Assembly: GCA_047495785.1 (NCBI GenBank)
Contig: JBLDXI010000015.1
Location: 1,922,001-1,986,000, forward strand
Origin: Lepidodermella squamata
Taxonomy: Eukaryota; Animalia; Gastrotricha
Length of the DNA stretch: 64,000 bases
Direction: 5' to 3'
Numbering within the stretch: the stretch's first letter is position 1; each line of letters starts with the position of its first letter. Below are positions 3,001 to 63,251 of the stretch, in pieces. Position numbers and translations under genes: made by a program. The notes under the pieces were generated by a model. It saw only the letters and a list, made by a program, of their open reading frames with translations. It was not told the origin of the DNA and made no database searches.

Positions 3001-3520
3001 ATCAGAAAATAAGATGCGATTTCACGAAATCGCAATTTTCCCAATGTTGCCTGTGGCTGATTTGCGAATGAAAGCTGAAAGCTGATCAATTATAATATTT
3101 GACTTTTTCAACGACGTTCTAGCTAAGAATCACGTAAGTCAAGAGATTCGCTCTAAGTAGAGTTGAAATTCGTTGCGATCATGGTTTTTTCTAGCGAAAA
3201 AATCGGAGAAATATTCTGCGCAATTTTCCCCTCAGAGCTCAACTCATAGCGAAACTTGATGCTATCATAATTCGATAAAAATAATTGACAGCCTCATTAA
3301 CGCTTATTTCTAAATTGATGCCAAGTCCGCTAAAATTTGGTTAAGCTAAAATATATCAAAATAATATACGAAAGTGTCCAAGTATTTTGGACATTTCGGA
3401 AATTTGAAGAATGGAAAATGACTATTGCTTACCTTGAGCGGCATAATAAGCGGTCAGCTCGGCTAGAATCGGCAGTAGATCGAACGTAAATTGAATGATT
3501 AACCATCGGAATATGAGCAT
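1..3520 (-). CDS. ROS1/Sevenless-like receptor, N-terminal ectodomain (partial; continues off the left edge)
   Basis: GT-AG exons 3520-3433, 2960-2563, 2461-1552, 1498-1229, 1171-706, 655-462 and 414-<1 join in frame. The protein has a signal-peptide-like N-terminus (MLIFRWLIIQFTFDLLPILA). YWTD-like propeller segments (FDFISQRVFWLE, TDWLNGDVY) alternate with FN3 repeats (FTALKPGKYLAKI, FNNLQPFSEYEL...IRTQPSSPSEPR), the ROS1/Sev architecture. The kinase domain is not in the window. Confidence 0.65.
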
Positions 3521-4790
3521 TTTGCATAGTCCTAATAAATTATCGTTAGAAGAAAGTTTTAAACAGGCAAAAATTAGACAGTAATTAGCAAAACGGCTAT
3601 TGCAAAATAAACATAGCCGCTGTCATGCGTAAAATTTGCGAGACAGACACGGAAAAGGTGGCAACAATAGTGTAACAATAACGCGGTAATGACGCGGTAA
3701 ATGAAAACATTAACAAGGCGGTTGGGCGGCGGTCGGCGGCTGTGGTTTTCGAAGGTGCGCGCTCAGTTTGCTGGCTACAGGCGTGTTTGCTCTCTTGAAG
3801 GTTGACGAAACTTGCGCCGCACGCGCAACGGGCCCGCCGCGCACCTCTCATGGCTACATATATATCGGCGTCCACTGCCGGCTCATCGCGCGCGTGTTTG
3901 CCCGAATGAAGTATATAAGCGCCATATACTTACTCTTGAGCCAGAGCGCGAGCGAGAAAGTGTTATGCGCGCGATACAAGTAATGATGATGATGAGTAAA
4001 AATGGGTGTACGTCGCCTCTTGCTCAAAGGTGAGGCGACAAACTGCGTATAAAAATGTGTATGGGTATGGGTAATAATAATATGGCCTCTTTCCTGATAT
4101 GCCAATATATATATATACAATTTATGTACAGGATTTTGGCAACAACAAGACACGTGTAAAACGCCTCGTAACACTTTGCGCGCTACCTTGTTTGCTTTAC
4201 ATAAAGAGCCATCCCGCCCGAGAAATTATTCTCGGGCGCCGACGACGTCTCACCTTCACGTCAATATACCACTACTACCGCTGCATAGTAGGAGGATATC
4301 GTATGCAGCGAACAGGAAGGGCGAGAGGCTAAATCTGAAGCCCGGGATAACAACGTGACAAAAAAGTGTTGACTTTGCGACAACTTGAACACGAGAGGCT
4401 GGCCTCCTTAAATACTGGCGTAGCATATAGGCAGCCCAGTGCAGGCCTGTCCACCACCGGATGCGCGCCCGTCGCGTTGAAATGCAGGCGCGAGAGCGGA
4501 GTGTGCCAGTCAAAAGTTTTGACGCGCGCCCATCGCTCGAGTGTTTAGACTCAGATTTCAGGGTAATACAATATATATGGCCGCATAACAACAACACACG
4601 CGGTAATATTACCGTGCCCCTGAATAAACAATCAGTTAAAATTTCTTCTCGAGCCAGGAACCGGTGGCTCGTGCGCCTTTCACATCAAAGTTTTCAGCAC
4701 CACCTAATTAGCTACATGTGAGCCAATTATAATAAGGCAGAAAATTCCGGAAAAAACCGGATCTAGGTTGCGTGAACAATTCCAATTAAG

Positions 4791-5215
4791 TAGGGTCGAA
4801 ATATTTGCACCACTAAAAATGAAGTTCCAACACTAAATTTAAGCGTCCTGGTACTAAATTTTTCAGATTCTTTGCGATTTCGTCGTTTTCGTTTTTTGAT
4901 CGATACTGGTGCCCTCCCTGAACCTAGGATTTTTTGTTTCAACTACATGTTGCCCCAAGTTACGCAGGCAAATTATCGATGTTGGGTTACAAGACGGCTG
5001 ATATCGGGAAAATCGCTGATTTGTAAAATCGATACCTGGAATCGATATCGGCTCTGTAAGAAGAAGTATATTTCGTAAACTGGCCGCTCATAGCCTGAAA
5101 TACGCGTAATATGAAGATCTATCGGTTAGACATGATAACAAATTTGAGGTTCTAGTGAAGACTAGAAACTGGATGCTGGATTCTCGAATTTAGGTTGCGC
5201 ACTTGGCACACCCAA
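4791..5215. mobile_element. Dispersed non-autonomous repeat (MITE-like), copy A
   Basis: Aligns by eye along its length with the reverse complement of 43140-43575 (e.g. ctaaatttaagcRtcctggYactaaatttttcagattc; caagacggctgatatcgg). It has short T(A/T)GGGT...ACCCAA-like ends and no credible ORF. Confidence 0.75.
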
Positions 5216-14098: not shown

Positions 14099-15082
14099 TT
14101 ACGGCTCAGTATTAGCCGAATTTTTAATGGCCGAAAGCAGGCTGACCATTGTAGAAGGCGCATTAAGTCGGCTTTCCAAGGCAGGAGTATTTTGAGTAAT
14201 AATGCTCGTTATCGGCAGCCAACATCTATGGAAGCTACTAATAAATACATGATAATGAAATCCCTGGATATCAAAAAATAACTACCTTGTCTTCGAAGGC
14301 GATATCTGTACTTCACGACCTGACTTTGTTAATCGCGTGGCTAATACCGGTGCTTGAGGTACCTAACGAAAACGAATTGAACATTCTTTGAAGCTGAATT
14401 TTCAGTTATTTACCAATGATTTAGATTTTTTCTGACGTTTTGAATAAGACTTTCCAATACTAGAACGACAGCGTCCTTCGCTAATCCATTTTGTTATAGC
14501 TAATAGCGTCGGAGCATCCACAGGGTCCATTTGCTTCACAGCTGGGGTAGCAACTCGATGATAATGGACTAATCGATGCCTTGGAGGTAATTCGAATAGT
14601 TTTGGTGATGGTTTGACTGTTACAGGCGATGAGACGCGACTGTGAGAAGCAGCATGTAGAGCTAGAGCTGACTCAGTTCCATATGCTTTGTCACAACCAG
14701 CTTGAGCACATCTAGATAGGATCATAAAATTATTTCCTTATTTTTAGTGATCAAAATTCAATACTCACATGTATGGCTTCCGAGGTCCGTGGTACTGTAA
14801 AACATGGCGAAATAACGGATCAGCTTTGCTAAAAGTCTTCCCATTAATGCGACATCCTTCCCAGCGGCATGCCAAGTTACGAGCCCCGTTGATCGGGGAA
14901 CGAGCAAAATGACGAGATTCCAAATGCTTGACCAGGTCTGCGTCAGTATCAAACATTTCTTTGCAGCGATGCCATTTACATTGGCGTTTTATCGACGAGG
15001 AGAGATCCTGACTCATTTTATCGCACGCATTCAGACTGGCTGACGACTTGATCGGACGGAAGTTAATAATCTCTTGCTTCAT
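14099..15082 (-). CDS. AEBP2: AEBP2/Jing C2H2 zinc-finger PRC2 accessory protein
   Basis: Three GLI-like C2H2 fingers (CKWHRC...HLESRH, CRWEGC...RHVLQYH, KPYICAQAGC...HAASH). They are followed by DPVDAPTLLAI (cf. DFFDAQTLDAI) and PVLATRLTKSGR (cf. TVIAKRKEDSGK). Exons 15082-14769, 14711-14414, 14362-14286 and about 14234-14099; the last exon is less certain. Confidence 0.75.
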
Positions 15083-16564
15083 GATCAGCCGCCCTTCGTC
15101 CTTTACTCTCACTCGCCCCAAGTAAAGACGCCTAGTAAAGAGTAAATAATTATGAAAAAAAGAATTGACTAAATGAAGATGGGTAGATTTCGCAAAAACT
15201 CAAATGACGACCGGCTCGACGAGCACTAAGAGCGAAGCGCGTACACTTTCATATTCCAACACGCTATTTCCCACTTCCCATATCCTAAATTCATTCTACC
15301 ATAAGCGGCAAGCGGTAATCCAAGCAAGATTGCAGTTAATTATCATGGTCGGTAGCAGAAAGAAGAAACAAAAACCATCAAAGCGGAAAAGGCAAGCATA
15401 AGCCGTAAGCCAAGTAAACGTTCAGCGATTGAGTATTCGATAATTAAGCATAGATCCCAGATCGAGTACAAACTTCGATGAAAGAGGAGGTTGGGGCCGG
15501 TAGCCGGTATACTCATTTAGCAGCAAACAAACGCGTTTGTATAGAGCATAGTTGCACCCCCAGCTCCTGAAAATGTAACATGAAGGCTGGCGACACCTGG
15601 AAACTTAATCGGTGACCACATAGGGAACCCTTACAGTGACTGATAATTTTTCACTACTGTTTTGTCCATTTCATCAGGGTTTTCCTGACTCAAAACCCAA
15701 AACGCTTCAAAGCGAGTGTCATTTCAATAACTGATAAAATTACACGCCAGTCATTCGAGTTTACGACGCTAAACAATACGAGGGTTGCAACACCTTGCAA
15801 CACCGACACTATTACCTATGCTATGATGCCAATGGCGGCAACGGGCTTGAGGACATGGAGGGATAGGCTGCAAAAAGTGGGTGGCTCCACCGCCAGGAAA
15901 AAGTGGCACAAACAATTCACTAAAAACCAGCTTTCACTAAAGATAATTTGTAACTATAAAATTACAATTTTGGTTCCAAACACAAATTTAAAATATAAAC
16001 TGACTACTTTTGAGAATTTAAAATAATGTATGTCGCCGCAGGTTTTGGTTCGGTGTTTCAAGTGTCAAGAGTCGTCGTTTAACCATGTTTAAGCACCTGC
16101 CAGTGCCACCTGCCGCCTGAATCCCAAGATCCCACGGAAATAACATTCCCACCCATGTACAGAGAGCGGCACACAATTTAGAATGACAAAATAACCCGGA
16201 CTGAGCCAAAATGACAGAGTAAAGACAATAGCCGGACGGCCTCTCGGCCAAAGCTAACCAGCGTCGTCAGGTGAAAAGATTATGAAATTATAAGACCCAG
16301 TATGTGGTGCGACTTAATCTCACTGCGACAGAGGGCGCAGATGCTTGAATATCGCTCTCATCGAAATTCGCGTTGAATGTTGACCCTGCAAGGTGTAGCT
16401 GCTGCCAACTCCAAGTCTCTTGAATTTTATCTCGGGCCAAAACATTGTATTTGTTGGCAGTTCCCCAGTTTGATAAATTGGATAATAGAGGGGAAATTGA
16501 GGCTAACAATCCCACAGATCATCGCGGCGTGTTATATTTGGATACCAGGTTTTCATTCTTTCGT

Positions 16565-18871: not shown

Positions 18872-20169
18872 TTAAGTTGACATTAATATGTAGAGGACAA
18901 TATCGGCGAGACACGTCGAAATGACAACAACGACGCCCAACATAAGATCAAGCAATCGAATTGCTGTAATTTTCATCGAACAAAACTTCAGAACTTTTTG
19001 ATTCGTGCCCTGCGCATAGTTTGAAATCACCAGCATGTAGCAGGTTAGAGCCATGCCAAGAATATACTTCATAGCTATTCCAACGACGAGGTAAATAACT
19101 TCCGAGGTCGATGGAACCTGGCTGGCCAATAAGCCAAGGGTAACAGAGTTAGCCAAGACCACAGTCATGCTGAAAGCTGGCCTATCAGGCATATCTGGCG
19201 GCATGATAAGGCAGAACACTTGGGTGACGAAAAAGCCATAAGTCGGCACGAAAATTGTGGAAACGTAATACTCCGCTAGGCGCTTAAACTGCAATCTCAG
19301 GCTGATTTCATTCTGTTTGAAGTTATCGCTTTCCATCCCATCAACTTGCATGAAGGTTGTTATTGCAAAATCATGTTGTTCAAGAAACCATATTTCATTG
19401 GCAGGTATGAAGTTTGCCAATGGTTCGAATACCAGCACTACAAATTCAGTCACATCTAACGTGTCGACCGGCCACAGATTCAAAGAACAATTGAATACAT
19501 CGAATGGGAACTTTGCGAAGGCAGTATCGCAGATCGATGTTATGCTACCGATTGCTTCCAAGTATCCATAGAACTTTCGATCCTCTGTCAAGCCAGCTTT
19601 CGCGTTCTTTGCCATTCTACAGACGATATAATAAGATGTATAATTCATTAGGAAGAATTGATGTTAGATTACGAATCGAATGGATAATTGGTTGTGAATC
19701 CGTTATCGTGGGCAACCACCGGGTACCATATCGGTTGTTCATCCGGTGTCCCGAGTGGCATAGGGAAGGAAACTACGGTCGGATTATTCTGGCAGGCATT
19801 GCGTGCAATTTCAGTATTTAGACTCGAGCAATTGATTGGCTGGCCGCAGTTGTAGAGCCATTCGAAGCGGAAAACTCCACTCATGGACAGCCTTGGAAAA
19901 TAATTCAAGTTTTTTTGAAACAATCAAATGACGTCTTCTCACGTTTTGTCCTTATCAATGACATTGATGAAACGGGTTGGTACGATTCTAAGCGATACTT
20001 TGAGCTTCTCACCACACATCAACTTGCTTTCAGCAGGCAGATTAGTTGAGGTTGAATCAGGGCTGGCTTCCATAAGATCAGCTCGAATTTTTTCGATCTC
20101 AGATTTTGAGCAGTCTGAAGGCCTTATTGAGATGGTTGAAACCATAATCAGAACGTGCGTTACCTTCAT
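18872..20169 (-). CDS. Divergent Cys-loop (pentameric) ligand-gated ion channel subunit, nAChR/5-HT3-like
   Basis: Exons 20169-19943, 19891-19673 and 19616-18872. Features: signal peptide, IWYP (loop A), exact C-x13-C loop CDTAFAKFPFDVFNC, pre-M1 FKR, four TM segments and PPDMPDR before M2. Confidence 0.9.
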
Positions 20170-20250
20170 GCTTATATGTCAATGTAAGCTGAAATTCTAT
20201 ATTTTAGGTAAAATGTGGTTTACAGTAAAACTGTCGTGAAATTGCATGGT

Positions 20251-22180: not shown

Positions 22181-23252
22181 CTATTGAGCTTTGGTACGCT
22201 GTGGGCTGGTTTTCACGGGCGAGCCACTCGACGAGCCAAACAGATGCCGGTTCAGCCAATCAGAGCTTGGAACGTCAAGGTAGTTGTCAAAATCGACCAG
22301 TTTCGCCTCCAAGTTGTCACCCAGAGCTTGGTGATATTTTTCGATTGCGCCCTCCTCAACGCTCAATTTGTGGGAGCCAACCTCTTTCCAACCCCTAGTT
22401 TCGCTTGGCAAGAACAGCTTGAATGGACTTGTCGCAATGTCAGCCGAAAATGGAGCAATATTATCATTAGAAACCTGTAAAAAAGGCAATAAATTATATC
22501 GAAAAACGACTACAAAAAATATATAATTTCAATTTTTCCACAATGTCGCATTCAGATTACCAAAGAATCAATCACATTTTGGGTTAACTTTTGCTGAAAA
22601 CTGTAGCTGCCCATTCAAACCAATCGAACGTCACTGAAAACGATCGGTAGCTTGAGTTAATAGCAGCATTTATTGATTTATACTTGATTTTACGACGATC
22701 TACCTGGGTGGTCGGTAGCCGCCAAGATTTCAAGTAATACTACTGATTAGGAATGATAGTCTGGCTTCCTATAGCACAAAATATCAGTTGAATGTGTTTC
22801 ATCAAGCGACCTCCTTAAATTTAGTTACGAAAAAAACAGACACTTACAATAATTACACAGGCATCGGAGCAATTTTCCAGAATCTTCTGACCAACTCCAG
22901 CGCTGAATAAGGTCAATCTAAAATATTAGGATGGATTAATTGAATATTGAATAGTTTGTAAATGATATGAAATTTACCCGTTATTTGTGAATAGCTCATT
23001 GGCTTGATAATATCCAATAATTGCTTTACTCTTCACCTTGCAATAGGCTTCAATCTGGGCGAAGGCGACCTCCAACATGGGCGTGACTCCGATCAAATTG
23101 TGGAAAAGCGGAATTACATCCGATACAGTGTAACGGCCATTAGATTCCTGTTCGCCCAACAGAATTCCATTCACTGTCCGGTGGGGATATTTCACGACGT
23201 GAAGCAGTAATTTGCAATAAGCATCAGATGTAAAATGATAAGATCCAGCCAT
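22181..23252 (-). CDS. EMC8: ER membrane protein complex subunit 8/9 (MPN-like, UPF0172)
   Basis: Exons 23252-22978, 22917-22848 and 22474-22181. Motifs AYCKLLLHVVKYPHRTVNGILL, DVIPLFH, PMLEVAFAQI, IGYYQANE, LVDFDNYLD..DWLN. Confidence 0.93.
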
Positions 23253-23485
23253 TTTTCTAGAAAAATTAATAGTTTCACAATTATGCAAAGAAAATTTATT
23301 GTATGAGCTCAAAGTTGCTAAAAAGACGACGAAGAAAATCACGATTTTTCACGTAGCACTGGTGTCATATGTCATCAGATGACAGCTATTTCACGGCTGG
23401 AATTCACAGAAAGAAGAGAAAAACTTGTCACTATAAATCTGAAATTGATAGTCACTGGTTGTAAAATGCGAAATTTAGCAGTTGT

Positions 23486-25669
23486 TTAATCGCTATCTTC
23501 ATCAGCCGAAGAAACCTTGCTGCTCGAAGCTTCAGATTCAGAACTGGTCGAGTCGTCGACGTCACTCGGCACCAAATCACTAGATTTCGATTTCGACGCA
23601 GATTTAGCCGGCGATTTCGTTGTAGCACTTGAGCTTGCAGCAGGCTTGGAACTGCTGCCGCCCTTCTTGTTGTACTCCACCATATCCCGCTCATACCGAG
23701 CCCTGTCGTCCTTGGCCAACTTTTCGTACTTCGTCTTGTCGGTACATTTCTTCCACAACTCGCCCATAATTCGAGCAATATCCGCGACACCAGCTTTAGG
23801 ATTTTCTGACTTGACCTTAGCGCGTTGCTCGTTCGTGAAGAAAAAGAAGGCAGTCGTCGGTTTTTTCGGCGCGTTCGGGTCTTTCGCTTTCTTCTCCTTC
23901 CGCGGCCTTTTACCGGTTGGGGTTGATGGTTTCTTAGCCGGGGCTGGTTTTTTCGCAGCAGGGGCTGGTTTCGACTTCTTGACCGGTGGTTTTTCTTCCT
24001 CAGATTCGCTCTCCGACGCACTTCCTGAGCTAGACCCAGACCCAGATTCGGACCCTGATTCAGAAGCCGAGCTCTCAGATGCCGACTTCTCAGAACCACT
24101 CGTAGATTTCCGCTTAGCCTCCTTGACAGGTTTCTTCGACTTCTTCTCATCGCCGCTCTCGCCTTCACTTTCACTAGTGCTTGAAGTGTCTTTCGGCGCT
24201 TTTGCGTCCTTGTTCGGATCGTAGTCATCATCCTCGTCGTCCTCATCGCCATCCGACCCACCATCGTCGTCGTCATCGGCTGGTTGCGATTTGCCCTCGG
24301 CTTTGACTCGTTCCAAGTAGTGATCTGGCTCTGCGTCGTCTTCGTCATCTTCCATATCTTCATCGTACATGCGACCACCTTTCTCGCCCTTATTCTTGAC
24401 AGGAAGCTGCTTCTCGCGGACGTAATCAAACAGCGGGTCGTATTCGCGCTTGTCAATACCCGAAAACGTGTATGAAGAACCGCCTTTAGTTTCGATTTCG
24501 AAATCAAAAGATTTTACGAAGCCTTGTTGAGATCGAGCAAAATTGACGGATAAAATTTCTTCGAAGCGAATATAGATCGGCGGCTTCGGAACGAACATAA
24601 AACCACGTTCCAGCGGGTAGAGGAAACCAACGCCGGCTTTGTATGAGCAGCTCAAGAACTGACTGCCGAAAACAGCTGCCTTGAAATTGCCAGGGATAGT
24701 CAATTTACGGTTGACAAGAGCTTTAAATACTCGGCTGAAGACTTCGAATTCGGGTCCCGACATTTCTTTCTGCAACTTGCCATCGTATTTATTCTTGAAA
24801 TCTTCCTCTGGGAGATTTACTTCGAAATTGGTCAGCTCTTGATCTTTATCGAAGTTACAGACCAAAAAGTGATAACGAGTTTGGCCTTGTTTGATCGGCG
24901 GATCGAGCGCGACTACGAAAAATACATGACGATCTTTGTGGGGCAGTAAGAATAATCGCAGAATAGTGGAATAGGCGATTTTGTAATCGAAAGATTTGCC
25001 ATGGAGCTGTAGGAAAGTCGGATACAATTTGATGTCGTAGCGACCACGAGGCTGTACGAGACTGACTTCAGAGAAGACCGCAATCGCATCTCCGGTTGTG
25101 CGAATTACATCAGCGCGACTCATAACCTTTTCGCAGAACATATCGACGCATGAGTTGTCAGGGTCAGGAACATGGAATCGAATTTCCATTAAAGAGATGG
25201 GCGCATCATCGTATTGATGCAGGGCGATTGATACTTCGTTCTTGCCGGGAGTGCAGTTGGACACGGAGTTGAGCGGGATTTCAAAAGCTGGCTGATCTTC
25301 AACGTCAAAACATAATGTATTGCCTTCAAACTTCGCTTTGCCCCAATTCCAGCCTTTCAAAGACAGCTCTTCTTTTTGAAGCTCTTTGCCAAAGGTGTTT
25401 TGACAGAACCTTGACAAGTTATCGTAGTCACCTTCCTTCAATCCATCGAAAAAGAAGATTTGACCTGATTTGACAGCTACTCGTAAGCAAGCGCCTTTGG
25501 CTCTTAGCGTCCAAGATAGCTTCTCGATATCAGAGGCGGTGATGCTGTCAATGCGGCCAGACTTAATGTCTTTAAAAATAATTGAAGTGGGTTGTAGCTT
25601 TAAACGACCAGGGTGCATGCATCCTCGTGATTCTTGCAGTACGTCCGTGTATTCAATGACGTCCGCCAT
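23486..25669 (-). CDS. SSRP1: FACT complex subunit SSRP1 (intronless, 727 aa)
   Basis: KGWNWG, PRGRYDI, LHGKSFDYKI, LDPPIKQGQTRY, GFLYPLERGFMFVPKPP, an acidic region and an HMG box (KDPNAPKKPTTAFFFF...GELWK). Confidence 0.98.
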   Translation of the reverse strand: MADVIEYTDVLQESRGCMHPGRLKLQPTSIIFKDIKSGRIDSITASDIEKLSWTLRAKGACLRVAVKSGQIFFFDGLKEGDYDNLSRFCQNTFGKELQKEELSLKGWNWGKAKFEGNTLCFDVEDQPAFEIPLNSVSNCTPGKNEVSIALHQYDDAPISLMEIRFHVPDPDNSCVDMFCEKVMSRADVIRTTGDAIAVFSEVSLVQPRGRYDIKLYPTFLQLHGKSFDYKIAYSTILRLFLLPHKDRHVFFVVALDPPIKQGQTRYHFLVCNFDKDQELTNFEVNLPEEDFKNKYDGKLQKEMSGPEFEVFSRVFKALVNRKLTIPGNFKAAVFGSQFLSCSYKAGVGFLYPLERGFMFVPKPPIYIRFEEILSVNFARSQQGFVKSFDFEIETKGGSSYTFSGIDKREYDPLFDYVREKQLPVKNKGEKGGRMYDEDMEDDEDDAEPDHYLERVKAEGKSQPADDDDDGGSDGDEDDEDDDYDPNKDAKAPKDTSSTSESEGESGDEKKSKKPVKEAKRKSTSGSEKSASESSASESGSESGSGSSSGSASESESEEEKPPVKKSKPAPAAKKPAPAKKPSTPTGKRPRKEKKAKDPNAPKKPTTAFFFFTNEQRAKVKSENPKAGVADIARIMGELWKKCTDKTKYEKLAKDDRARYERDMVEYNKKGGSSSKPAASSSATTKSPAKSASKSKSSDLVPSDVDDSTSSESEASSSKVSSADEDSD

Positions 25670-26463
25670 TTTACGTAAAATCTAACAAGGAAAGATCAAA
25701 ATAATCCAGCTAATTCAGCTAATTCAGCATAATCAAAACTCAGGAACGACCAAAACTGCAGGCATAAAGATTCTGGCATAAAGATGGCCGATAACTGAAA
25801 GACACTGTTCTGACTAGAGTAATCGATTTCTTGTAAGGAACAAAAAACAGGCTTTTTTGGTGGGGGGAAGGTACTGACTTCTCTAAAAACAACAAATAAC
25901 AGCAGTTCAGGGTGAAATGCGAATGCAAAACATGTTGAGACCTCGCTAAACTCAGCAGCAAAACGCGCTTTTCCGCATTTCCGCGCGCTTTCATTTGAGG
26001 AGCTTTATTTGTTTTTCGCGTATATTAAGATTAAAATATGCGTAAATCAACCAGTAGACTGAGTCAATATATGAGGTTCACCTACTTAGGTATTTTGGCC
26101 AAATATTTTCAAGGTTTTTTTTTCATCACGCGGGCAACGTTGACCAGAGCAAAAGCGTTGTGCAGTTGGAACGAATCTGAATCCTAAAGCGGGACGCATG
26201 ATGCCAACTGCGCGTTCGTATTGGTAAGTGAAATCCATACTTTGCCTATCAGGTAACCGAAGTTATCAAAGAGTCGAGCTTTCCCTCGCTTGAATGTTAG
26301 GCTTGGATTCCAGTTTTTCGGTGTGATTGATGATCGATATCTATGAGCTTTTCCCTGTCGCCAGGTTGCTACTCATAGGATTGCGCGTAACTATATTCTA
26401 TAAGGGTGGCTACATTTTTGATAAAATTTGATTTCGGCTTAGAATTCATATTAATACAAAGCA

Positions 26464-28767: not shown

Positions 28768-28941
28768 TAATAGCGACAATCATGTTTTAGGATATTACTT
28801 TGATTCGTTTTGCGCCCTCTTTCATTTCACGGTTATACGAAACATGTGATGCCTGAAGTTACTGTGTTGCAAAATAACGTACTTTCTTTTATCAGAAAGC
28901 TGACTGATTTCTCAAATTAAAAATTTATAGATTTTTTGATA

Positions 28942-44900: not shown

Positions 44901-44985
44901 CAAACTCTTCAGCAGTTCTTTGCAGGATTTGATTAGAATCTTCCAACGTCATTTCGAAGGCAGATGGCGGTAACAATTGAGTCAT
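41926..44985 (-). CDS. CCHCR1: Coiled-coil alpha-helical rod protein 1
   Basis: Multi-exon in-frame reconstruction. LLPPSAF N-terminus, NLRVQVEALQHIIDVQEEQL (cf. LLQVRVQSLTHILALQEEEL) and KWRRKVYDIMVRTK (cf. RWREKVFALMVQLK). The 3' end is uncertain. Confidence 0.8.
43140..43575. mobile_element. Dispersed MITE-like repeat, copy B (inverted relative to 4791-5215), in a CCHCR1 intron
   Basis: Reverse-complement similarity to 4791-5215 along its whole length. Confidence 0.75.
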
Positions 44986-45129
44986 TTTTTTATAACCTAC
45001 GAGAAAGTTACATCGAATCGAGTGCAAAACAAAAGAATTGTGCAACTGATCAGTATATTTATTCACTCAATTGAACAACAAACAAGATTCAACAATAAAA
45101 ATTTAGAGGCATTTTTTCGCTGAATAATA

Positions 45130-45471
45130 TCATGAATTAGGACCGATTACCCCGAGAAACTTGGCACGCTCCATTTCGCGAGCTTCTTCAACGCCAAGTT
45201 TGTAGGCAAGCTTAATGAGATCACGCACTTTGTCCATCAGCTCAGCCCTGGTCAGAGATGACAATTCATGAACAGCATCGTTCAATTCACGCTCGGACAA
45301 CTCGTTCCACTTGCTCGGAGATACCGTGTTCAAGGATAGGCCGGGTATTGAGGATTTGGAAGCAATGCCGTCAACGCCAGGTAATCCATCACTCCATATA
45401 TCGGGAGACGCCCGGTCAAGCTTTTCCATGCTCATAAGACTGCTGCTAGATGCCCCAACATCCTTCGCCAT
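45130..45471 (-). CDS. LIN52: LIN-52, MuvB/DREAM core subunit (intronless)
   Basis: LMSMEKLDRASPDIWSDGLPGV (LxSxExL-like motif and RASP site) and LAYKLGVEEAREMERAKFLGV. Confidence 0.93.
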   Translation of the reverse strand: MAKDVGASSSSLMSMEKLDRASPDIWSDGLPGVDGIASKSSIPGLSLNTVSPSKWNELSERELNDAVHELSSLTRAELMDKVRDLIKLAYKLGVEEAREMERAKFLGVIGPNS

Positions 45472-46229
45472 GTTAAAAGTTTCTAATAAAAAACTATGGA
45501 AAGAAAGAGTAAAAAGAGTAACGACGTGGTGTTAAAATTGGGCATTCAACTTTAAATTGCAAATCTAGTGAAGCAAGGAAAAGTCGACGCGTGGTTCCAC
45601 GTAGTTTTATTAGTCATAAGCGAAGAAAGCACATCAACGATGTTCCTTTTTGCCATTAATTACTCCTTAACTAACTCGATCCGCGAGGACGGCTTGGAAT
45701 GCTATGCCCAGACATTGCCGAGAAAACCAAGGATTCATTTATCAGGATTGAGGATTGATCATTGATATTGGCTAGATCAACATATTAGTGCCCAGTAGAT
45801 AAGATCTTTGTTAAAGTGAAGTTATTTGCTTCAAGGACATGCAGCTCTGCTGGGAGCTTCGTCAATGACGCATGGCGTGATGCGTGATGTATGATTTTCG
45901 AACGAGCAGTCACCATTATTTCTACATTTTTACACGTCACACAATCAATTTGTAGGGAGTGATAGCAGCGAAAGACTTTCGGCTGAAATGGGTGGATGAG
46001 TAGTAGAAAAAGAGGGTGAAGGCTGAACGGGAAGATCGCAGAGAGCAGAGATAAGTAAGCGGAGGACGGAAGAGATCAGTACCGTAGGTCGTAGATAATT
46101 TTAAACTGAGCAAGTGAACGTTAGTTCTAGCAAAATCGGTCATATTGGCCGACGCTACGTGCAGCCTGCGATCAGCGATATGCGAGCTCCGGACGCCATG
46201 AGACGCGATTTGGGAGTTATTACCCGGAA

Positions 46230-47442: not shown

Positions 47443-48715
47443 CTATGCCGAAGCATCTCGATACCAATCAAACATCTGAACAAGCCAGCAGTATAAGCAT
47501 TGCCTATCAAAAGTGTCATTATGAACACGACCCATTTTTAGGGGGTGATAAATATTATTTGTGGCATTATAGGTTGCTGTGACTGGCCAATCTCTTTTGG
47601 GTCCCCAAATTTGCCCGCGGCGGTTGATTAACCGAAGCCTGGATCTGGGAGTAATGGCGGATAGAATTGTGCCAACGGCCAACTCCATGTAAACGCCATG
47701 AGCAGCAAATATTTTGAAAAGCTCATTAGCTCTGGCTAAATCAGCTCGAGACACATAGAACATGTCCGCGTAGATGTTCCAAACTCTGAAAGGCCCTATG
47801 TATTCAAACATTAACGAACTTCAACAGACTTAATAAAGAATTCTCACCTCCAGTTCCAAAAACAAAGTCATTGAAGGTGGATTCGTTATACAGGGATATT
47901 TGAACATAGGCGTTCAAAATCGACTGACGGAAGTCACGCAAAACATCCCATTTGGCGGGATAGAGACAGTCTGCGGCATTATCTCCACTCATAGCATTGC
48001 ATTGCTTCATGCGCAAGGTATCATAGAGCTTCTCCGGAGGACCTAGCAACCAATTATCGGTTGTATTGAGATTTGAGGCTTTGTAATTCCACAGATTAGG
48101 GATCAAGTCATCAGAAATATGAAGTATGCCGTCAGTCTCTTCATTAGCAATTAGCTGTTGAACGTCTTTGAGAGATTCGCAGACTATTGGTAGGCAAGAG
48201 TAAAAAATTGCACCGGTTGGCTCTGTTGGTTCTTCTGAGACTTCTACAATTGAAACATTGACTAGGGGCAGTAATTTTCCATCTCGAAGTTCTCGCAGGT
48301 GTCGGATTCCAGTGACGCAGTAAACGATCTTTTGAAAAATCCCACTGTATAGCCGATGAGTTTTCGATATCGAGCGGAACAGCGGGTTATTGTAAGATAT
48401 CACCAAGATTACTCGGCTGAAATTCACCAGGTTGCTGAAATTATCGTGCACCACTCTAGCAGACCCTAGAATCGGTGGACAACTTTCGTTTCTGGTGAAA
48501 TGGAAGGCATCGTGATTCGAGCAATCAGCCTCTGGATCGGAAAGTTGAGCATTTTCATCTAATGTCTGTTTTCCGAGAAGGAAGCTTCGAAAAACTGGGT
48601 AATCTATTTTCCAGTCAATATAGAATTGAGAACCTACAAGTGCGGCGAGAGATATGAAGACAATGCTATAGACGAGTCTATTTATCAATCCGATACTACG
48701 GGGTTTTAAATCCAT
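47443..48715 (-). CDS. Type II membrane DUF288/STELLO-like putative glycosyltransferase
   Basis: Two exons joined across a 52-nt intron (47847-47796). N-terminal TM anchor, VILVISYN, LYSGIFQKIVYC, GILHISDDLIPNLWN, ADMFYV and VYMELAVGTI...YHPLK resemble the DUF288/STELLO C-terminal region. Confidence 0.65.
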
Positions 48716-49330
48716 CTCAGAAGGCAACTAAAGTCAGTCCGGACTTCGCGTCTTACTGTCTTTCTGTCTTTGCTGTAACATGTCACGGCAAAAAATCTAA
48801 TGTTTTTACTTTTTCATACTCTCCATAGATATACCAGCTTACTCAGCTGCATCGCAGATGCGTTACATTTGATTGAGTATATATAGTTGACGAATTTAGT
48901 TTACTTAGCGACTTGACCGGAACTAGGTACCTGAATAGTATCATATTATCAATAATACCTCATTAATAAAAGTAACAGGAGATGTCGCCTGCACTGTCAG
49001 AAGAAGACCAATGAACAGCAAAATCGCATCAACCGCAATATAGATTGAGCTGATAAAGTGGAACTTTTGCTCAAAATTGTTCTAGCCTTGATTCCGCAGG
49101 TTGCTGGGGTTCCGAGGTTTCTGCGGGTTCGCCGCCGTTTTGGTGAACTGGATATGCGCTTTCTTCTTCAGCAGCGGTGCTGATGCGCGCATCTTGTGGC
49201 TGCTGTGGTTCGACGGGCAATTCACCTCCTTCACCGCCATCTGATCCAAATCAAGCACCGCCCCGTTATTCTGGGGTTATTATTTCTTCTCCTATCTTCT
49301 TCCTTCTTCTTCTTTTCTCAGCTTTCTTCT

Positions 49331-49418: not shown

Positions 49419-50167
49419 TCATCTTCCGTCTACTTTTTCCTCCCAGCAGCATCGCTAGTTATTCTTTTTCTTATCCTTGTTCTTTGAAGTTTCTTTGAAG
49501 ATTAGTAGTCTGTCGTGATGTCCTTGATGCAAATGGGCTTGACATTGTTGGAGCAGAAGACCGTCCGCCACTGAAACCGCGCCCCTGCCTATTGCCCTTC
49601 GTTTTTTGATCGTTAGCAATGCTGGAAGATCAAAGTTTGTTTCGTCGCGTCCATCATCACTGATTTCAGAGAACTTTGAACAGCCGCCTAATTGGGAAAA
49701 TCTCAAATCGAGCCAATCTCCTTTCATTTTATGACATTTCTAGTGGATCCTTTTACCTTTTGTATACCTATGTAAAGGAGAGTTGTAGAGCTTAGCCAAA
49801 CTTTCTCTAGGCATTGCTGGAGAATAGATTTCACTTGTCAAAGCCGACCATTTCTCCGAAATAATTCTAATATTAAATGGTAAACCCCTTTTGCACAGCA
49901 CCGCAGATTGTATTAACCTCTCATTACGGACGCAAATCCGGCTGTTGCAAAAAGGTAGGTATGTCGATGATAGACACAGAGATCAGACAGCTCCGGCGAT
50001 CGTGATTAGCATTCCATTTTGAGCCATAAAACCTGCAGAGACTCGGCAATTGACAGCAGGTGCGTCTGGTTTCCAGCATCAAAATGCCTCTCCAGAATTC
50101 ATCAAACGAAATTTCGGCGAGGGCACGGCTTGGATCTCATTTTCTAGCAATTTTCCTTTAATCTCTA

Positions 50168-51839
50168 ATGAACAAATTGTTTGTTAACACTTGCTTACTT
50201 GGCTTCACATTACTTCTCTCAGCGCAGGGGGGAGCAGCTAACATCAAGGCTGATGCTTCGCCTGATGTTGATGCCAGCGGCTCAATTCACGATCACTTAC
50301 TAGTCGCCAATGAAACTCATGCACTCATCAGCTTAGAGAAACTATTCGCTGCTCTTAAGAAGGGAAAGGACGGTCAGCCTGCTCTTCCACCATGTCACAT
50401 GGCTGTTTTCGAAAAGTTCTTCCCGTCAAACTGTTCCATGTCCGTGCCCTCCACTACAACTACCACAACTTCTACGACTACAACTACAACAACTACAACA
50501 AAACCGACAACATCATCGACTACGACAACGACCAAACCAACAACAACAACGACCACTAAGGCTACAACTACTTCAACCACAACTAGACCGACAACCACGA
50601 CTCGAACTATTCCTACTACAACCACGAAACCTACGACCACTACAACTAAAAAATCGATAGTTACCCAACCAGGTACATTCAATTTTAATTAATTATGTAT
50701 TTTGATTTATATTGAGAAAATTAATTTGCTTATCGCAAAGCAAAATAGCTTAGAATGGCGCATTATTAGGTGCCATTCGGATGCTCACAGGTCACCAAAA
50801 TCGTCCTTAGAATTTTATTAATTAGTTCGCTTTCATAATCGGAGAAAAAATATTTTGCTGTGAATTTTTAAATGAGAAAATAATGATTGCCGCGGACCAA
50901 GACCCCCAAAGTTGCGCAATTTCGGGGGCCCTGAGGCATTTTTTGCTATTTGATCACATTTACGAGGTTTGAGTTAGGTTTGAGACCCTAAGTGTCTAAC
51001 CTCGTTTTGCTCAGAATTCCAGGCTCTGCGCGATGGTACCAATATCTTACAGATATCCGAAATTGTTTTCCCATTTTGAACATTCGAATAATACGAAACC
51101 TGTCGCAGATAGAAATAGCACAATGAAGCAAAAAATGCACTAATTTCGCTAATAATTATAGCCCAAAAATTGAAAATATATTCTGAACCATACAATTCGA
51201 TTTCATTTTACGAAGAGCGGCAGGGCCATCAATGCCGAAATTGAGCCAATTTATGGGCTTCACCACGTACACAGCCAGTTTCCCTGATCATTCTCAGAAA
51301 TAACACCTATGCGATACCATCCACCTCATAAACCATAGAAACCGTCTAAAATTGCTCATAAAGTCTCATCTATCGGGTCGGTTAACTACCTAGCTTCATT
51401 AATTCTGTGATCTTTCATTCGAAACTAGGAATTTTTTAAATTTGAATAAAATCTGAATAAAAAATAGGGCCGATTCTAGCCGCAAAATGCTTCCGCAGTA
51501 ATAATTTCGGAATTCATTTTTCCTTGGTTTTAATCTCATATATGATGCTTTTCAGCTCCGACAGCGGCTCCGCTGAAACAAGAGCCTTCTACTACAACCA
51601 CAACCCCGTCAACAAGTACAACGACAACTACCACCACAACCACAACGACCAGCTCGACACCATCTACCCTGACGCCGTGTGAGCAGTATCGATCAACAGC
51701 TGCGCCAACAACGCGCCAGCCATTCAAATTTCCGTGCCCCCACAGCCTGAGCCTAACGTCGGCAGGAGCGAAAATTATCACCGAAAACATCCCACCCTTC
51801 CTATCCATCATCCTACTCGCAGTTTTGAATCGATATTAA
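50168..51839 (+). CDS. Secreted or GPI-anchored Thr-rich mucin-like protein
   Basis: Signal peptide MNKLFVNTCLLGFTLLLSAQG. Exons 50168-50672 and 51557-51839 join in frame. Two poly-Thr tracts; the C-terminus SAGA...FLSIILLAVLNRY resembles a GPI signal. Confidence 0.75.
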
Positions 51840-52112: not shown

Positions 52113-54218
52113 TCAATCAGAATCAGTAATCTCCGACTCAGTGCCAACCAACGTCGAGTCGTCATCTGGCCGCTGGTCGCTGGTAACAACAGGCTCCATC
52201 GGGGTTGACTGCGAGGTGACGGCGAAAAATCGCGCCGATAACGGCTGCAATCGCTCCAACGCGGCGGCTTTCGTTAGCATCGACGATTTTTTACGCGAAA
52301 TCACGCCGCCCGTTTTCCGAGAATGAGGCGAACGCAGCTTTTTCACCAACTTATCCGCCACATTTCGATCCGATGTTTTCGGAATGTCAAACGCTGACGA
52401 AACAACCGAGGCGTTTGCCGAGTCTTCGAGGGCTGATACGCTTAACGCCGCCCCGCCGGCCGTTATTATCGACATATTACCGGCCTGGCTTGCCGAGGGG
52501 GATAGCCCTAAATTTCCGACCAATTCCGCTTTTTCACTCTGAGTTAACCCGCCGCCGTTAACACTCAAATTGTCCTCGTTATCGCCGTCTTGCCACTCCT
52601 TTTCCGCGTCTTTTTGAACAATTTCTCGAATTTGCTGGCGGCGTTTCAACGTGCCGGCTTTCGCGGTTATAACCCGCTCCTTTTTCCGATCCTCCTTAAC
52701 AGCCTTCTTTTTCGCCGCAGCGGCCGGTGCAACAACTGGAGTTGGCAGTGACTCGAACGATCGGTCGGTTTGAAGAACTGCGCGGAAGGTTTTGTTGCGG
52801 TGGACGGATTTTTGAAGATGCGTCGAGTTGTTGAAGGTTGAGAAGCAGTCTTCGGCTGATCGAGTGCCGACAATGGCGGCCACCGCTTGCCAGTAATCGG
52901 TTTCAGAGGTCGGAATCTCGTCGACTGCTCGCCGTAACGCGGCTAACTCGTCGTTAGTCCACGGGCCCTTTTTGAAAATCATTCGCTTTCGAGTTCGTCT
53001 ACAAAATTCAAATTACAAGTTAAAAAATTCGAATCGAATTTATTGAATTTAAAATCGAATCGAGATTTAAAAAATAATTAGTCCCTCAGATATAAAATCT
53101 CCTAATTAAAGCATAACTGAATTTGCCCGTAATTGAAAATAAAAAATTAATTGGGCGCAGACTTTGTTCCTCTGAATTTTTCTGATCTCAATGAAGATTT
53201 TCAGAATTCAGAAGGAAATTTCTACTTAAAAACCCATATTTGGTGATGATTTAAAAGAACAGGTATTAATTTTAATATATTTTGAAAGTATTTCCCCGCT
53301 AAAATATTATTCAGAAATTGTTTCAGAGAAAATTCAGAAAATATTATTGAAGCAAATAAAAGTAAGCAAAAATTACTTTTTCGGAGGGACTGCAGCGTCG
53401 TCAGATTTAGATGGCCTGAAAAAGAACAAAACTTGATAAACGAAAGGAAATGAAATAAAATCAATGAGACGGAATTAATTGAATGAAAATAACTAGTAAA
53501 TTTGGGAAACTCAATAAAAATTGAAAATTGAATTGCGCCAAAAATACTCCATCACAGCTTTTTTTGTTCCTCTAATTTTGTTAAGATTATTTCATAAACT
53601 AGTCCCACTTTTACGAAGAATTGAAATGCCTAGATGCTCGTTAAAATCGGTTTTTTTATTTAAATATTATCAAAAAACAATAAAAAATTACCGTTTTGCT
53701 GAGACGAGGGTGAGTTCAGAGCAGGCCTTTCTAGATCGAGTAACTTTTTTAACAGGCGTAGTTTCACTTCTGCTTTTCCTCGGTGATAAGCCAGGCGGTC
53801 GTTTTGGAGAATAAGTCGCAGTCGCAAGAATCGACGGCAAATTTAATGGCTCTAGCTTAACTTTTGGTATCATAGAAAATAATTGTTCATCTGTTTTTAC
53901 GTTAGATCGAACAATCAAAAAACAGCAGTTTTATTAGATCGTCGTCGTAATTTTATTAAAGCTCCTACCTCTCTTCGCATTCGAGCGAGTACTTCGAGAG
54001 CCTTTCGTATCTGGCGAGACTTTTTCGATTAACTGGATGTTTGAGCTCGGTATCTGGTAATTACCATCGGCCGGCAGTATTTTGTACTTGTAAGGATCCA
54101 GCTTAATCGGCACCAGCCGAACCACCGGTACCATGTCGATACCAGACATTTTAGCTTTCTTCGGTGGATTAATATTGGTGTGGTTCGATCGCGCGTATTT
54201 GTTTCGAGTGACAAGCAT
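52113..54218 (-). CDS. MIS18BP1: MIS18BP1/KNL2-like SANT/Myb-domain protein (short form)
   Basis: Exons approximately 54218-53968, 53890-53692 and 52998-52113. SANT domain WTNDELAAL...YWQAVAAIVGTRSAEDC is followed by ITAKAGTLKRRQQIRE (cf. MIS18BP1 ITAKVGTLKRKQQMRE). Confidence 0.75.
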
Positions 54219-55513
54219 GATAAAAAAAACTACAAAATTAGCAGCACGTCATTTCTAATGAAAAGTCTGCGGGTAGAGTAAAGACGCACGCTGTGATGAA
54301 GACGAGTTACGCCACTAACGGTGATATTTCACATTAGGAGCACAAATTCTGTCGTGCAACGCGGTAGTAACAAGAGGCCATTGTCTGTAATGTACTGGAT
54401 GAGTATGAAGCGGCGCGTAGCGGAAGAAACACTTTTGTTAAAGAGGTCAACTGTGGCACCACAGTCGCGCTAAGCTCAAAGGCTGGCCGTGCTAATGGAC
54501 TGCGTAGGTTTAAATAGAAGTAGTGGGTACAAAATTACACGAGGTCATTTAACTTCAGGTCATTTTGAAAGTTATGACTCTACCACGGAGTAATGAAAGA
54601 CAAGGAAAATAGAGTAAAACTTGCCGCCAACTGGTCACTATCTAGACAAGAGCATATTTATCTAAAATTTATTAAGCTTTTCAGTCGGCAACATCTTTTT
54701 ATTAAATGCATTGCACACGTAAAATTTCATATGGGATGGTAGTAAAGAGCAGATTGCGATTTCGGACGTTAGTTGACAGTGAAGCTGATCGGCAAAACAA
54801 TACGATATACTTTGTTTAAAGGAAATGATCGCGTGTCTTCATGTTCATAGTTGATTGTTATTTTTTTTTATAAACTGAGTGGGTATGAATCATTCAGCTA
54901 GGCAGCATTAAGCGACTGCGATACACTTTTGCAGCAAAGCACAATTTTTGTACTACCTTCAGCACAAATGATAAAATTTCAAAGAGAAAAGTTGAACGAA
55001 AGAAAACAGAACACCTGCGAGGAGCTAGACCATAAACCTGAGGGTCGTGATGCACCCTGCACTCCCAGTCAGCATTCGAAATATTCAAAGAGGTACTCAT
55101 TAAATGTTATATTGAAAGGTAACAGATCATGATAATTTAGAAGGTATCATCTCAATCCTATCCCAACTCCTATCCCAACGCCAACATTTCTTGATTTCAT
55201 CATACAAGCTAGATATCTACGAGAATGTTGCCAGGGCCGCGATAAGTTAATGATTCATTAAATATCCTACAATTAATATATTCCATGGAAAATTAAATAA
55301 CCACTTTTCCGAAGACAACAAAAAACGAAAACCGTAAGTCAACTGTCAACTAAACCATTCTTGCTGGGAACTGATGCTGAGAACAAATAGAAAAACCTCG
55401 ATTATAACCCAGCGGCAAGATTATTTGTTTTCTAAAAAAAGAGGGACGCCATCGAATTAATAAGGACAAGTGATCAAGGAATTAAGCTGTGTCGGCCTGG
55501 CGGCCTTTGACAG

Positions 55514-58976: not shown

Positions 58977-59043
58977 TGGATGTAAACGAGGGTTCCCCGT
59001 AAGGTCATTACCCGAAGTTGCGATGAATATAAGAGAAAAATAG

Positions 59044-59115
59044 TTCCCTGACCGGGAATCGAACCCGGGCCGCCGCGGTGAGAACGCGGAATCCTAACCA
59101 CTAGACCATCAGGGA
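59044..59115 (-). tRNA. tRNA-Glu (CTC)
   Basis: TCCCTGA...TCAGGGAA; anticodon arm CCGCG-TTCTCAC-CGCGG. Confidence 0.95.
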
Positions 59116-59191
59116 GGATGTACCTGGATCCTATAATTGGGATGTGACATTCGTTAGGAATATTAGGATATGACTGTAAAAAAGTTGAAGC

Positions 59192-59265
59192 TGCCCCCTG
59201 TGAGGATCGAACTCACGACCTCCAGATTATGAGACTGGCGCTCTAGCCAACTGAGCCAAGGAGGC
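59192..59265 (-). tRNA. tRNA-Met (CAT), elongator type
   Basis: Identical to 57827-57900. Confidence 0.95.
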
Positions 59266-60044
59266 GCTATAAAGGATGTATTATAAAAGCAAATACAAAA
59301 ATATCAACCTATGATTAAAAGCTGTGACATATGTAAAAGGGTGACCACAGTCAAAAATGCCCGCTAATATGTACGTCGACATCTTATTCACCAACATTAT
59401 CACAATATTCACTAACGTCTCGCTGCTGAATCTGGAACCTTCAAAGGTCGAGTGTCGAGTCATTCATTTCTATGTCACAAATCATTAACGAGCTATTTAG
59501 GATTTAGGTACAAATAATTCAAGTTACTATATAGAAATATTTTTGCGCATCTGTACTTTTCAACCGATTCAACCGTCTAATACTGCGATTTCTCGATAGA
59601 AAATGAATGGATTGAAATTAAATAGGAGAAAACAGGAAGCAACGTGTTTCAGCCAATAAGTGAGCTTGCACATTTTTTGATTTCAAAAGCATGACCATTT
59701 TCAACGGCGTGGCATTGTTTTGCGCAGGTCAGCAACGTGAGAAATCATGAAACAGGTCTACCTAAATAAAAAACAGGAATTTTAATGAGTTGAAACCGGG
59801 CAAATTCACGTTTTTTAGAGCGGGCGATGTTTTTTAAATGATCGCGTAAATGCGCGGTGGTTGTTTTGCGGTGGAATAGTGTTTAGGATTTTCGGCCAAA
59901 AGAAATAAAAAAGGTTGCGAGCAACAGCAAACTCTGAAAAAATCAGTTTTAAAACTCTTCACTCGAATAGACAATCAAAGGCTGGTTCTGCAATGTGCTT
60001 AGCTTTTAGAGTATTTTTATCGAAATAATTTGACTGATTATTCA

Positions 60045-61918
60045 ATGGCGAAACTAATAGAATGTGTACCCAATTTTTCAGAGGGGAGGTCAAAGGAGGT
60101 AACTCTAATCACATTGTTGTTCAACAGTTTCACACAATACCTATGTTTCTACTTCAAGGTCATTCAAGCTATTTCATCCGCTATTTCCGATACTCCAAAT
60201 GTCAAATTGCTCGATGTCGATCCAGGAACTTCAACCAATCGAACGGTTTACACCTTTGTTGGATCACCGTCTGGATGTGTCGAGGCGGCTTTGGCAGCGG
60301 CTCGAGTGGCTTATCGATTAATCGATATGACAAAACAATCGGGAGAGCATCCCCGCATGGGAGCTCTTGACGTTTGCTTCTCTATCTAAGAAGAAATAAC
60401 AGTTCTAACCATCTACTGCATTTTTCCAGGTTTGCCCATTCGTTCCTTTGAATCCAGAGGATATGGCAATATGCATTCAGTGCGCAAATGAGTTTGGGAA
60501 GCGCCTTTCCGAAGAGCTGAAAGTCCCAGTATATCTCTACAACGAAGCTGTGACTGATCCAAGCAAAGATTACCGCAAAACGCTGCCCCAAATTCGAGCA
60601 GGCGAATACGAAGCCTTTGCTCAGGGGAAGGCATCGAAGCCCGAATGGAAGCCAGATTTTGGACCGACTGATTTCAACGCGCGATGGGGCGCCACCGTTA
60701 CTGGGGCTAGAAAGTTTCTGGTCGCCTACAACATCAATGTTCTTGGAACGAAAGAACAAGCCCACCGCATTGCATTGAACATCCGTGAGCAGGGCCGTGG
60801 TCCTAAGGAGCCGGGTAAGTTCAAGCATCTGCAGGCTATTGGATGGTACCTGGAAGAGGCAGCGATGGCTCAGATTTCGACAAACATTCTCGACTTTGAT
60901 GAAACACCAATGCATCGAGTTTTGGAGGAAAGCAAGCTTGATGCTGCCGAGATGAAAGTTGGCATTGCAGGGTCAGAGCTTGTCGGTCTAGTTCCTCTGA
61001 AAGCAATGCTCGATTGCGCTGAGTACTACATTAAGAAAGAAGGGCTCTTTGTTCTGGAGGAGTCGCAGAAAATTCGCCTGGTTATTGACAGACTCGGCTT
61101 ATCATCGATCAAGCCTTTCAAACCAGAAGAGCGTATCATTGGTATTGAAATCCCTTTGTCTGTTACAATGTAAAGCTTTACTTCTTCCTTCAGAGTATCT
61201 TGTCGGGGCGAATAAGCTTGGGAAATTGGCATCCTTGTCTGTTGCTGATTACGTCAGAAATGTAGCAGCACGCACGCCAGTGCCCGGTGGAGGCTCCGTC
61301 TCAGCAGTAGTTGGTGCAATGGGCGCTGCTTTAGCTACAATGGCGGGCATGCTAACATTCGGAAATCGTAAATTCGAAAAGGTCGATCCTGAAATGCGAA
61401 AATTGATTCCTGAATTCCACGCTGCTATCGCCAAGTGTTTGCCCCTCATTGACGCTGATGCCACGGCATTTGCGGTGAGCTTTCTGTTCAAAATCCTCGT
61501 AATTCAAAATTTCCATCTTGCTTCAATATAGGATTACGTCGAAGCGAATCGCGAATTCAATGCCGTTGCGAAGAGTGGAGACGCAGAGAAAATATCCGCG
61601 GCTGAGAAAAAGCTGAGTGAAGCTGCCTTAAGATCGGTCAAAGTTCCACTGGATCTGGTGCTATTACTGGATTCTTTATGGCAACCTTTGGGCGAGCTTG
61701 CGAAATATGTCAACCCAGTGGCGACGTCTGACGTTCGCGTCGCTGGGCATTGCCTAGCTGCTGCAATTCATGGAGCGGCTGCGAACGTTAACATTAATTT
61801 GCCCAATTTGAGGCAGCGAGATGATGCTTTGGAAGCAAGCTTGACGCTCGGCAAAGTTGCTGACGCTTCTGCGGATAAGAAGCTAGCTCAGGCCCTGAAA
61901 GGTCTTCCCGATGCTTGA
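60045..61918 (+). CDS. FTCD: Formimidoyltransferase-cyclodeaminase
   Basis: [97 protein letters not shown]; four short GT-AG introns. Confidence 0.97.
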
Positions 61919-63234: not shown

Positions 63235-63251
63235 GGTGCATGGCTAGCTAT

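Follow-up and report, generated by a model that had tools for sequence, protein, structure and literature searches.

Spliced-leader trans-splicing at EMC8 and candidate trans-splice acceptors before start codons in the gastrotrich Lepidodermella squamata

Are the T-rich YAG trinucleotides found shortly before start codons in a stretch of the Lepidodermella squamata genome the acceptors of spliced-leader (SL) trans-splicing? The stretch comprises 64,000 nucleotides (nt) of contig JBLDXI010000015.1 (positions 1,922,001 to 1,986,000; hereafter the window), and a preliminary description of it had listed 13 genes with such an acceptor and proposed that the animal trans-splices most of its mRNAs. 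Direct reading of the sequence placed all 13 where the description had them: a YAG immediately precedes each predicted exon start (TAG at 12 sites and CAG at 20188), and the sequence upstream is mostly T-rich. We give a probability of about 0.8 to the reading that these are 3′ splice sites for SL trans-splicing. At one of them, EMC8, a leader was observed in RNA, and we infer the same use for the majority of the other 12.

RNA evidence was examined over positions 23200-29000 (5,801 letters), using contigs from three public runs, two of RNA (X1 and X3) and one of DNA (X2). This stretch takes in four of the 13 sites (23256, 25681, 26443 and 28931). At EMC8 an X1 RNA contig agrees with the window up to 23258 and then continues into 21 foreign letters, and on the gene strand the junction reads ...TGCGAATTTGATTTGTGTCTA-AG-AAAAATGG. 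Together with the two ambiguous AG letters, the foreign letters make up the 23-mer TGCGAATTTGATTTGTGTCTAAG. Since a spliced mRNA cannot retain the AG of the acceptor itself, the leader ends in AAG and the junction lies at 23257|23256, the exact nucleotide that had been predicted; one of the four sites in the stretch was thereby confirmed. Neither the 21 letters nor the 23-mer matches the 64-kb window anywhere, with up to three mismatches allowed, and the 23-mer is therefore not a nearby upstream exon. What the X1 contig carries at 23256 is a short 5′ sequence foreign to the locus and joined at an AG acceptor, as the preliminary description had suggested looking for at the listed acceptors. Spliced-leader trans-splicing occurs at EMC8, and this is the one leader-bearing junction visible in the single 5.8-kb stretch examined.

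The source of the leader was sought by an exact-match scan of metagenome contigs, which found the 23-mer in two public contigs, L002 and L003. In both it runs directly into GTATGTAT, a GTATGT donor. Rfam places on L002, in this order, the end of 28S, 5S, the leader copies and a nearly complete 18S (1-2004), and on L003 the end of 28S, 5S and the leader gene. The leader followed by GT, which the preliminary description had expected in the genome of the animal, was thus found on these outside contigs, where it forms the 5′ exon of a small RNA gene of its own, with a GT donor. By analogy with nematodes, a small gene next to 5S that holds a leader exon and its donor has the layout of an SL RNA gene. 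The 23-mer of L003 is preceded by AACCATC, and a second leader-like gene of L002 (2660-2698, minus strand), which reads AACCATCAAGTTTGATATTTCCGATACAG and is followed by GTATGTAT and two hairpins, starts with AACCATC too; because the two genes share this start, a 30-nt leader consisting of AACCATC and the 23-mer is indicated. Judging by its sequence, the second gene of L002 possibly encodes a second spliced leader. In the predicted fold of the 93-nt RNA at L003 722-814 the donor pairs with AACCUUGG, and a hairpin is formed at the 3′ end; the last L002 copy carries AUUUUUUG.

The two ribosomal DNA (rDNA) spacers differ in several respects. 5S and the SL gene are co-stranded in L003 (456-814) and lie on opposite strands in L002 (2440-3027), and the RNA bodies 3′ of the donor are wholly different. 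By their sequences, the contigs represent two species or two spacer variants with an identical leader. L002 also contains, at 2440-2600 on the minus strand, four head-to-tail copies of the leader end with a GTAYGTAT donor, 5′-truncated and partly diverged. They are flanked by the second leader-like gene on one side and the SL RNA body on the other, and may be scars of repeated insertion and excision at the donor.

A junction seen in one contig of a SMART library might also be a chimeric cDNA or a contig mis-join. Some contigs of X1 are indeed scrambled, switching strand at 23306/23410 and 26334/26499/26441/26606, and an adaptor is attached at 26250. At EMC8, in contrast, the contig departs from the window precisely at the predicted AG, the foreign letters do not belong to an adaptor, and two unrelated public contigs have the same 23-mer ahead of a GT donor in small genes of the rDNA spacer, which makes an artefact at this site scarcely credible. 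The X1 contig at 26225-26873 follows the plus strand to 26334, then the minus strand from 26499 down to 26441, and then the plus strand from 26606. One of its breaks lies 2 nt before the predicted exon start of the RanGAP1-like gene, where a leader ending in AG would cease to match. The adaptor at 26250 is the reverse-complemented SMART adaptor, and both it and the scrambled contig are probably library artefacts.

The position of EMC8 relative to its neighbour provides a second line of evidence. An X3 contig starts with 21 T before 23281 (plus strand), which represent the poly(A) tail of SSRP1, a gene transcribed from the minus strand. The poly(A) site lies 14 nt past the AATAAA, and from the end of the SSRP1 mRNA to the EMC8 acceptor there are 24 nt only, too few to accommodate a promoter and a first exon. 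SSRP1 and EMC8 are thus encoded on the same strand at a very short distance, with the downstream gene trans-spliced, and the pair looks like an operon. By analogy, its gap would be nearer the tunicate type, or a nematode type lacking an intercistronic region, than the nematode SL2 type of ~100 nt. Two more tight pairs, LIN52>CCHCR1 and RanGAP1>APEX1, resemble it in layout and conservation, the ATTAAA of the RanGAP1-like gene being 7 nt before the APEX1 acceptor. We suggest that all three pairs may be operons copied as one RNA.

Both the acceptors and the pairs can be followed into relatives, here homologues at 73-84% protein identity on ENA metagenome scaffolds (L001, L004 and L006) and on a Logan contig (L005). 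A T-rich TAG stands before seven of seven orthologous ATGs, compared with a background of 10.5% at those loci (p ~1e-7), and the acceptor is TAG at every one of these sites. All three tight pairs are retained, and in each of them an AATAAA closely precedes the acceptor of the second gene: SSRP1>EMC8 in L001, LIN52>CCHCR1 in L004 (AATAAA ~20 nt before the TAG) and RanGAP1>APEX1 in L006. The distances from TAG to ATG in the relatives are 9 nt for SSRP1 (L001), 5 for EMC8, 16 for LIN52, 25 for CCHCR1, 19 (L006) and 27 (L005) for RanGAP1, and 16 for APEX1 (L006). The seven TAGs and the retained pairs show that the acceptors and the tight pairs are conserved, while the spacing of 11-12 nt is not.

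Could the acceptors have arisen by chance, given that AT-rich sequence before a start codon often holds a TAG and that the fitting cases were picked by a reader? We compared the 13 starts, which had been chosen in the preliminary description, with all 1,948 ATGs of the window. A TAG within 35 nt, with at least 8 pyrimidines among the 15 letters before it and no intervening ATG, was found at 10 of the 13 starts and at 14.1% of all ATGs (p = 6e-7). Six of the 13 starts, against 2.3% of the ATGs of the window, have a TAG exactly 11 or 12 nt before them (p = 2e-7), and when the peak was left free to be any 2-nt bin the clustering of distances gave p ~0.005. A loose scan for pyrimidine-rich YAGs with an ATG and an open frame behind them returned 159 hits, compared with 113 +/- 13 in shuffled sequence. 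This favours chance in so far as the motif alone is weak, and the scan, tried as a finder of gene starts, was dropped as too noisy. Because the loose motif by itself discriminates poorly, the enrichment arises from its position before true gene starts. A composition effect is also hard to reconcile with the TAGs at all seven orthologous starts of the relatives and with an EMC8 site that is used exactly as predicted, and we consider it very unlikely. The preferred spacing of 11-12 nt had a mixed outcome: it is significant in this window, but it rests on six or seven genes, and the distances in the relatives range from 5 to 27 nt, with none at 11-12.

The acceptors before start codons also show a preference for TAG. 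It accounts for 12 of the 13, compared with 38% of the pyrimidine-preceded YAGs of the window (158 CAG, 97 TAG; p = 8e-5), and the internal introns confirmed by RNA end in CAG, TAG, TAG and CAG. The bias may reflect a preference of the trans-splicing reaction or merely AT-rich intergenic sequence.

At the other three sites in the RNA stretch the picture is less clear. There is no RNA cover over the intergenic region 25528-26109 in the X1 and X3 contigs, which stop short of the SSRP1 acceptor at 25681. The spliced X3 contig of the RanGAP1-like gene ends at 28924. No leader was seen in the RNA contigs at 26443 or at 28931, the APEX1-like acceptor; because contigs lose minor variants, leaders missing from covered sites are not evidence of their absence.

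A number of results speak against SL trans-splicing as the general use of these acceptors. One of the 13 predicted junctions has been observed. The RanGAP1 acceptor at 26443 is crossed by unspliced X1 RNA, continuous over 26304-26691 at a depth of ~34 (71-140 deeper in the gene), and a GTAAGT is located ~217 nt upstream of it; given this read-through RNA, trans-splicing at 26443 is at most partial. Flatworms trans-splice only 11-47% of their mRNAs, and many of their SL acceptors double as cis sites (PMC12582326), for which reason an acceptor alone is no proof of trans-splicing. A polycistronic RNA was not seen, though the contigs could not have revealed one. The SL gene was observed on the outside contigs L002 and L003, not on DNA of the source genome itself. 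The 93-nt RNA of L003 folds only modestly better than shuffled sequences (z = -1.6), and a canonical Sm site, RAU(4-6)GR, was not recognised in it. No Rfam SL family matches the SL loci; the Rfam scan of the window and of these loci returned tRNA and rRNA only. That most mRNAs are trans-spliced, as the preliminary description had it, is accordingly not shown, with one site of 13 confirmed and RNA running unspliced across 26443.

A rival explanation is in cis, by which most of the acceptors would be ordinary 3′ splice sites of introns in the 5′ untranslated region (5′ UTR), joined to short non-coding first exons, and the leader would be added to a minority of transcripts such as that of EMC8. 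It would account for the unspliced contig over 26443 and the GTAAGT before it, as well as for GTAAG-like strings 29 and 115 nt upstream of 48727; the RNA stretch spans just four of the 13 sites, and in flatworms SL acceptors commonly serve cis-splicing too, and fewer than half of the genes are trans-spliced (PMC12582326). On the other hand, no cis joint from a local upstream exon to 23256, 26443 or 28931 was found in the RNA contigs, though four internal GT..AG joints were recovered from X1 and X3. These joints, at 27560/27614, 27848/28103 (alternatively 27848/27904) and 28440/28494, define three introns, one of them with an alternative acceptor. Three sites lie directly behind the poly(A) signal of an upstream gene, with no space for a promoter and an exon, and at 12 of the 14 sites examined there is no donor-like motif within 160 nt upstream. 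Taken together, we regard cis-splicing at most of the sites as unlikely, though it deserves to be taken seriously.

If SL trans-splicing is the use to which the acceptors are put, an SL RNA of ~90 nt would be encoded in the rDNA spacer beside 5S. Its 30-nt leader, ending in AAG and followed by the GTATGT donor, would be spliced onto T-rich TAG acceptors that stand 4-49 nt ahead of the AUG. Where the gene is promoter-proximal, the addition of the leader would remove the outron, and in tight same-strand pairs it would free the downstream gene beside the poly(A) site of the upstream gene.

The coordinates of the acceptors and of the associated poly(A) signals are collected in Table 1.

Table 1. 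Trans-splice acceptor of EMC8, candidate acceptors before start codons, and poly(A) signals adjoining them in the window.
Feature	Position	Strand	Details
ROS1-like candidate acceptor (TAG)	3518..3534	-	exon start 3531; ATGs at 4 nt (3527) and 11 nt (3520)
Zinc-finger (AEBP2-like) candidate acceptor (TAG)	15080..15134	-	exon start 15131; 49 nt to ATG 15082
Channel-gene candidate acceptor (CAG)	20167..20191	-	exon start 20188; 19 nt to ATG 20169; weakest of the set
EMC8 trans-splice acceptor (TAG 23259-23257)	23250..23259	-	first exon base 23256; 4 nt to ATG 23252; RNA junction
SSRP1 poly(A) signal AATAAA (23300-23295) and poly(A) site (23281)	23281..23300	-	24 nt upstream of EMC8 acceptor; X3 contig
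SSRP1 candidate acceptor (TAG)	25667..25684	-	exon start 25681; 12 nt to ATG 25669
RanGAP1-like candidate acceptor (TAG)	26440..26466	+	exon start 26443; 21 nt to ATG 26464
RanGAP1-like ATTAAA (28916-28921), then APEX1-like candidate acceptor (TAG 28928-28930)	28916..28944	+	exon start 28931; 11 nt to ATG 28942
USHBP1-like coiled-coil gene, additional candidate acceptor (TAG)	34887..34907	-	15 nt to putative start ATG 34889; absent from the preliminary list
LIN52 AATAAA (45063-45058), then CCHCR1-like candidate acceptor (TAG)	44983..45063	-	exon start 44996; 11 nt to ATG 44985
LIN52 candidate acceptor (TAG)	45469..45485	-	exon start 45482; 11 nt to ATG 45471
Candidate acceptor (TAG) of a 303-codon frame without Pfam match (DUF288-like in the preliminary description)	48713..48730	-	exon start 48727; 12 nt to ATG 48715
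Candidate acceptor (TAG) of a secreted mucin-like frame	50145..50170	+	exon start 50148; 20 nt to ATG 50168
Candidate acceptor (TAG) of a gene with a Myb domain further on (MIS18BP1-like in the preliminary description)	54216..54232	-	exon start 54229; 11 nt to ATG 54218
FTCD candidate acceptor (TAG)	60007..60047	+	exon start 60010; 35 nt to ATG 60045

The distances from acceptor to ATG agree with the preliminary description at 12 sites; the exception is 3531, where the nearest ATG is at 4 nt and not at 11. This first ATG opens a frame of 32 codons and the second a signal-peptide-like frame, and the choice of start codon for the ROS1-like gene is uncertain. Polypyrimidine tracts are weak at 20188 and 28931, with 6 pyrimidines of 15 at each. 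SSRP1 (727 aa) and LIN52 (113 aa) are each encoded without interruption, as expected for the two intronless genes that had been singled out for carrying an acceptor nonetheless. For SSRP1, EMC8 and LIN52 the chosen ATGs are, by comparison with Pfam, the true N-termini, and for FTCD the ATG is close to the N-terminus. The Pfam domain UPF0172 begins at residue 5 of EMC8, and the LIN52 protein covers positions 1-92 of the Pfam LIN52 profile. No exact protein matches are on record for SSRP1, LIN52 and two other single-exon frames.

The 13 listed genes belong to at least 15 in the window, the list having left out PIP5K (10053-10991) and the USHBP1-like gene (32296-34889). The Cys-loop channel exon at 18875-19663 has a partial copy, 61% identical, at 16607-16879 on the minus strand, which is a second channel gene or a pseudogene. 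Twelve tRNA genes form two clusters, at 57827-59265 and 62456-63235; a Met-Thr-Arg tRNA triplet with equal spacing on either side of the FTCD gene indicates a local duplication.

How does this arrangement compare with known systems? In Caenorhabditis elegans, as here, a short leader (SL1), encoded by a small RNA gene, is added at an ordinary 3′ splice site near the AUG, the SL1 genes are linked to 5S rDNA, and the downstream genes of tight clusters are trans-spliced. The leader described here is unrelated to SL1 and ~30 rather than 22 nt long, 12 of the 13 acceptors here are TAG whereas the nematode consensus is UUUCAG, and there is no evidence in our data for a specialised leader of the SL2 type. 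Flatworms, the proposed sister phylum of gastrotrichs, are likewise a spiralian lineage with an SL RNA of similar length, roughly 90-110 nt. They have longer leaders, in many cases with AUG at the end, whereas the present one ends in AAG, contains no AUG and has no visible likeness to them in sequence. Rotifers, also microscopic spiralians with compact genomes and SL trans-splicing, have a leader of ~23 nt that is unrelated in sequence. The protein matches and the assembly figures agree with a gastrotrich source of the window rather than with a rotifer.

Published figures allow some closer comparisons. In 49% of the trans-spliced transcripts of C. elegans no more than 10 nt separate the leader from the AUG (PMC3337475); a short distance between leader and AUG is, as such, already known. 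Flatworm operons mostly hold two genes, and trans-splicing is partial (PMC12582326). For the tunicates Ciona and Oikopleura, a secondary account has the downstream acceptor follow the upstream poly(A) site at a very short distance or with no gap at all (PMC12582326, citing Satou 2006). The 24-nt gap at SSRP1>EMC8 and the ATTAAA just before the APEX1 acceptor are similar to this, although tunicates belong to another phylum, their leader is unrelated, and a multi-gene precursor RNA was not seen here. The annelid Dimorphilus gyrociliatus has a compact genome for which trans-splicing has been explicitly excluded (PMC7854359). It was considered as the source of the window and rejected: the species has an annotated protein set, yet the database yielded nothing near-identical, and the best-matching named proteins come from spiralians. 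The L. squamata assembly has 122 Mb in 157 contigs, with 43% GC (42.5% in the window) and 28,377 genes, or 232 genes per Mb (PMC11660948).

The mechanism itself is known SL trans-splicing. In the literature searched, no paper connects gastrotrichs with spliced leaders or trans-splicing, the letters of the leader appear in none, and trans-splicing and operons both go unmentioned in the paper on the L. squamata genome (PMC11660948); the suggestion that the process could be undescribed for this lineage holds to that extent. We think it likely that Gastrotricha use SL trans-splicing, with operon-type gene pairs conserved between species and SL RNA genes in the rDNA spacer. A weaker possibility is that L. 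squamata has a constrained 5′ UTR of ~41-42 nt, made up of the 30-nt leader and 11-12 nt more.

For genome annotation, gene finders that ignore trans-splicing tend to fuse the neighbours in an operon and to misplace 5′ ends, and the acceptors listed in Table 1 are ready predictions for testing with RNA. If confirmed genome-wide, SL trans-splicing in gastrotrichs would add one more phylum to the scattered list of trans-splicing animals. As gastrotrichs have been proposed to be the sister group of flatworms, it would bear on whether trans-splicing arose once or several times in this clade: it would provide a sister-group comparison for flatworms, by which a single and a multiple origin within the clade would become directly testable.

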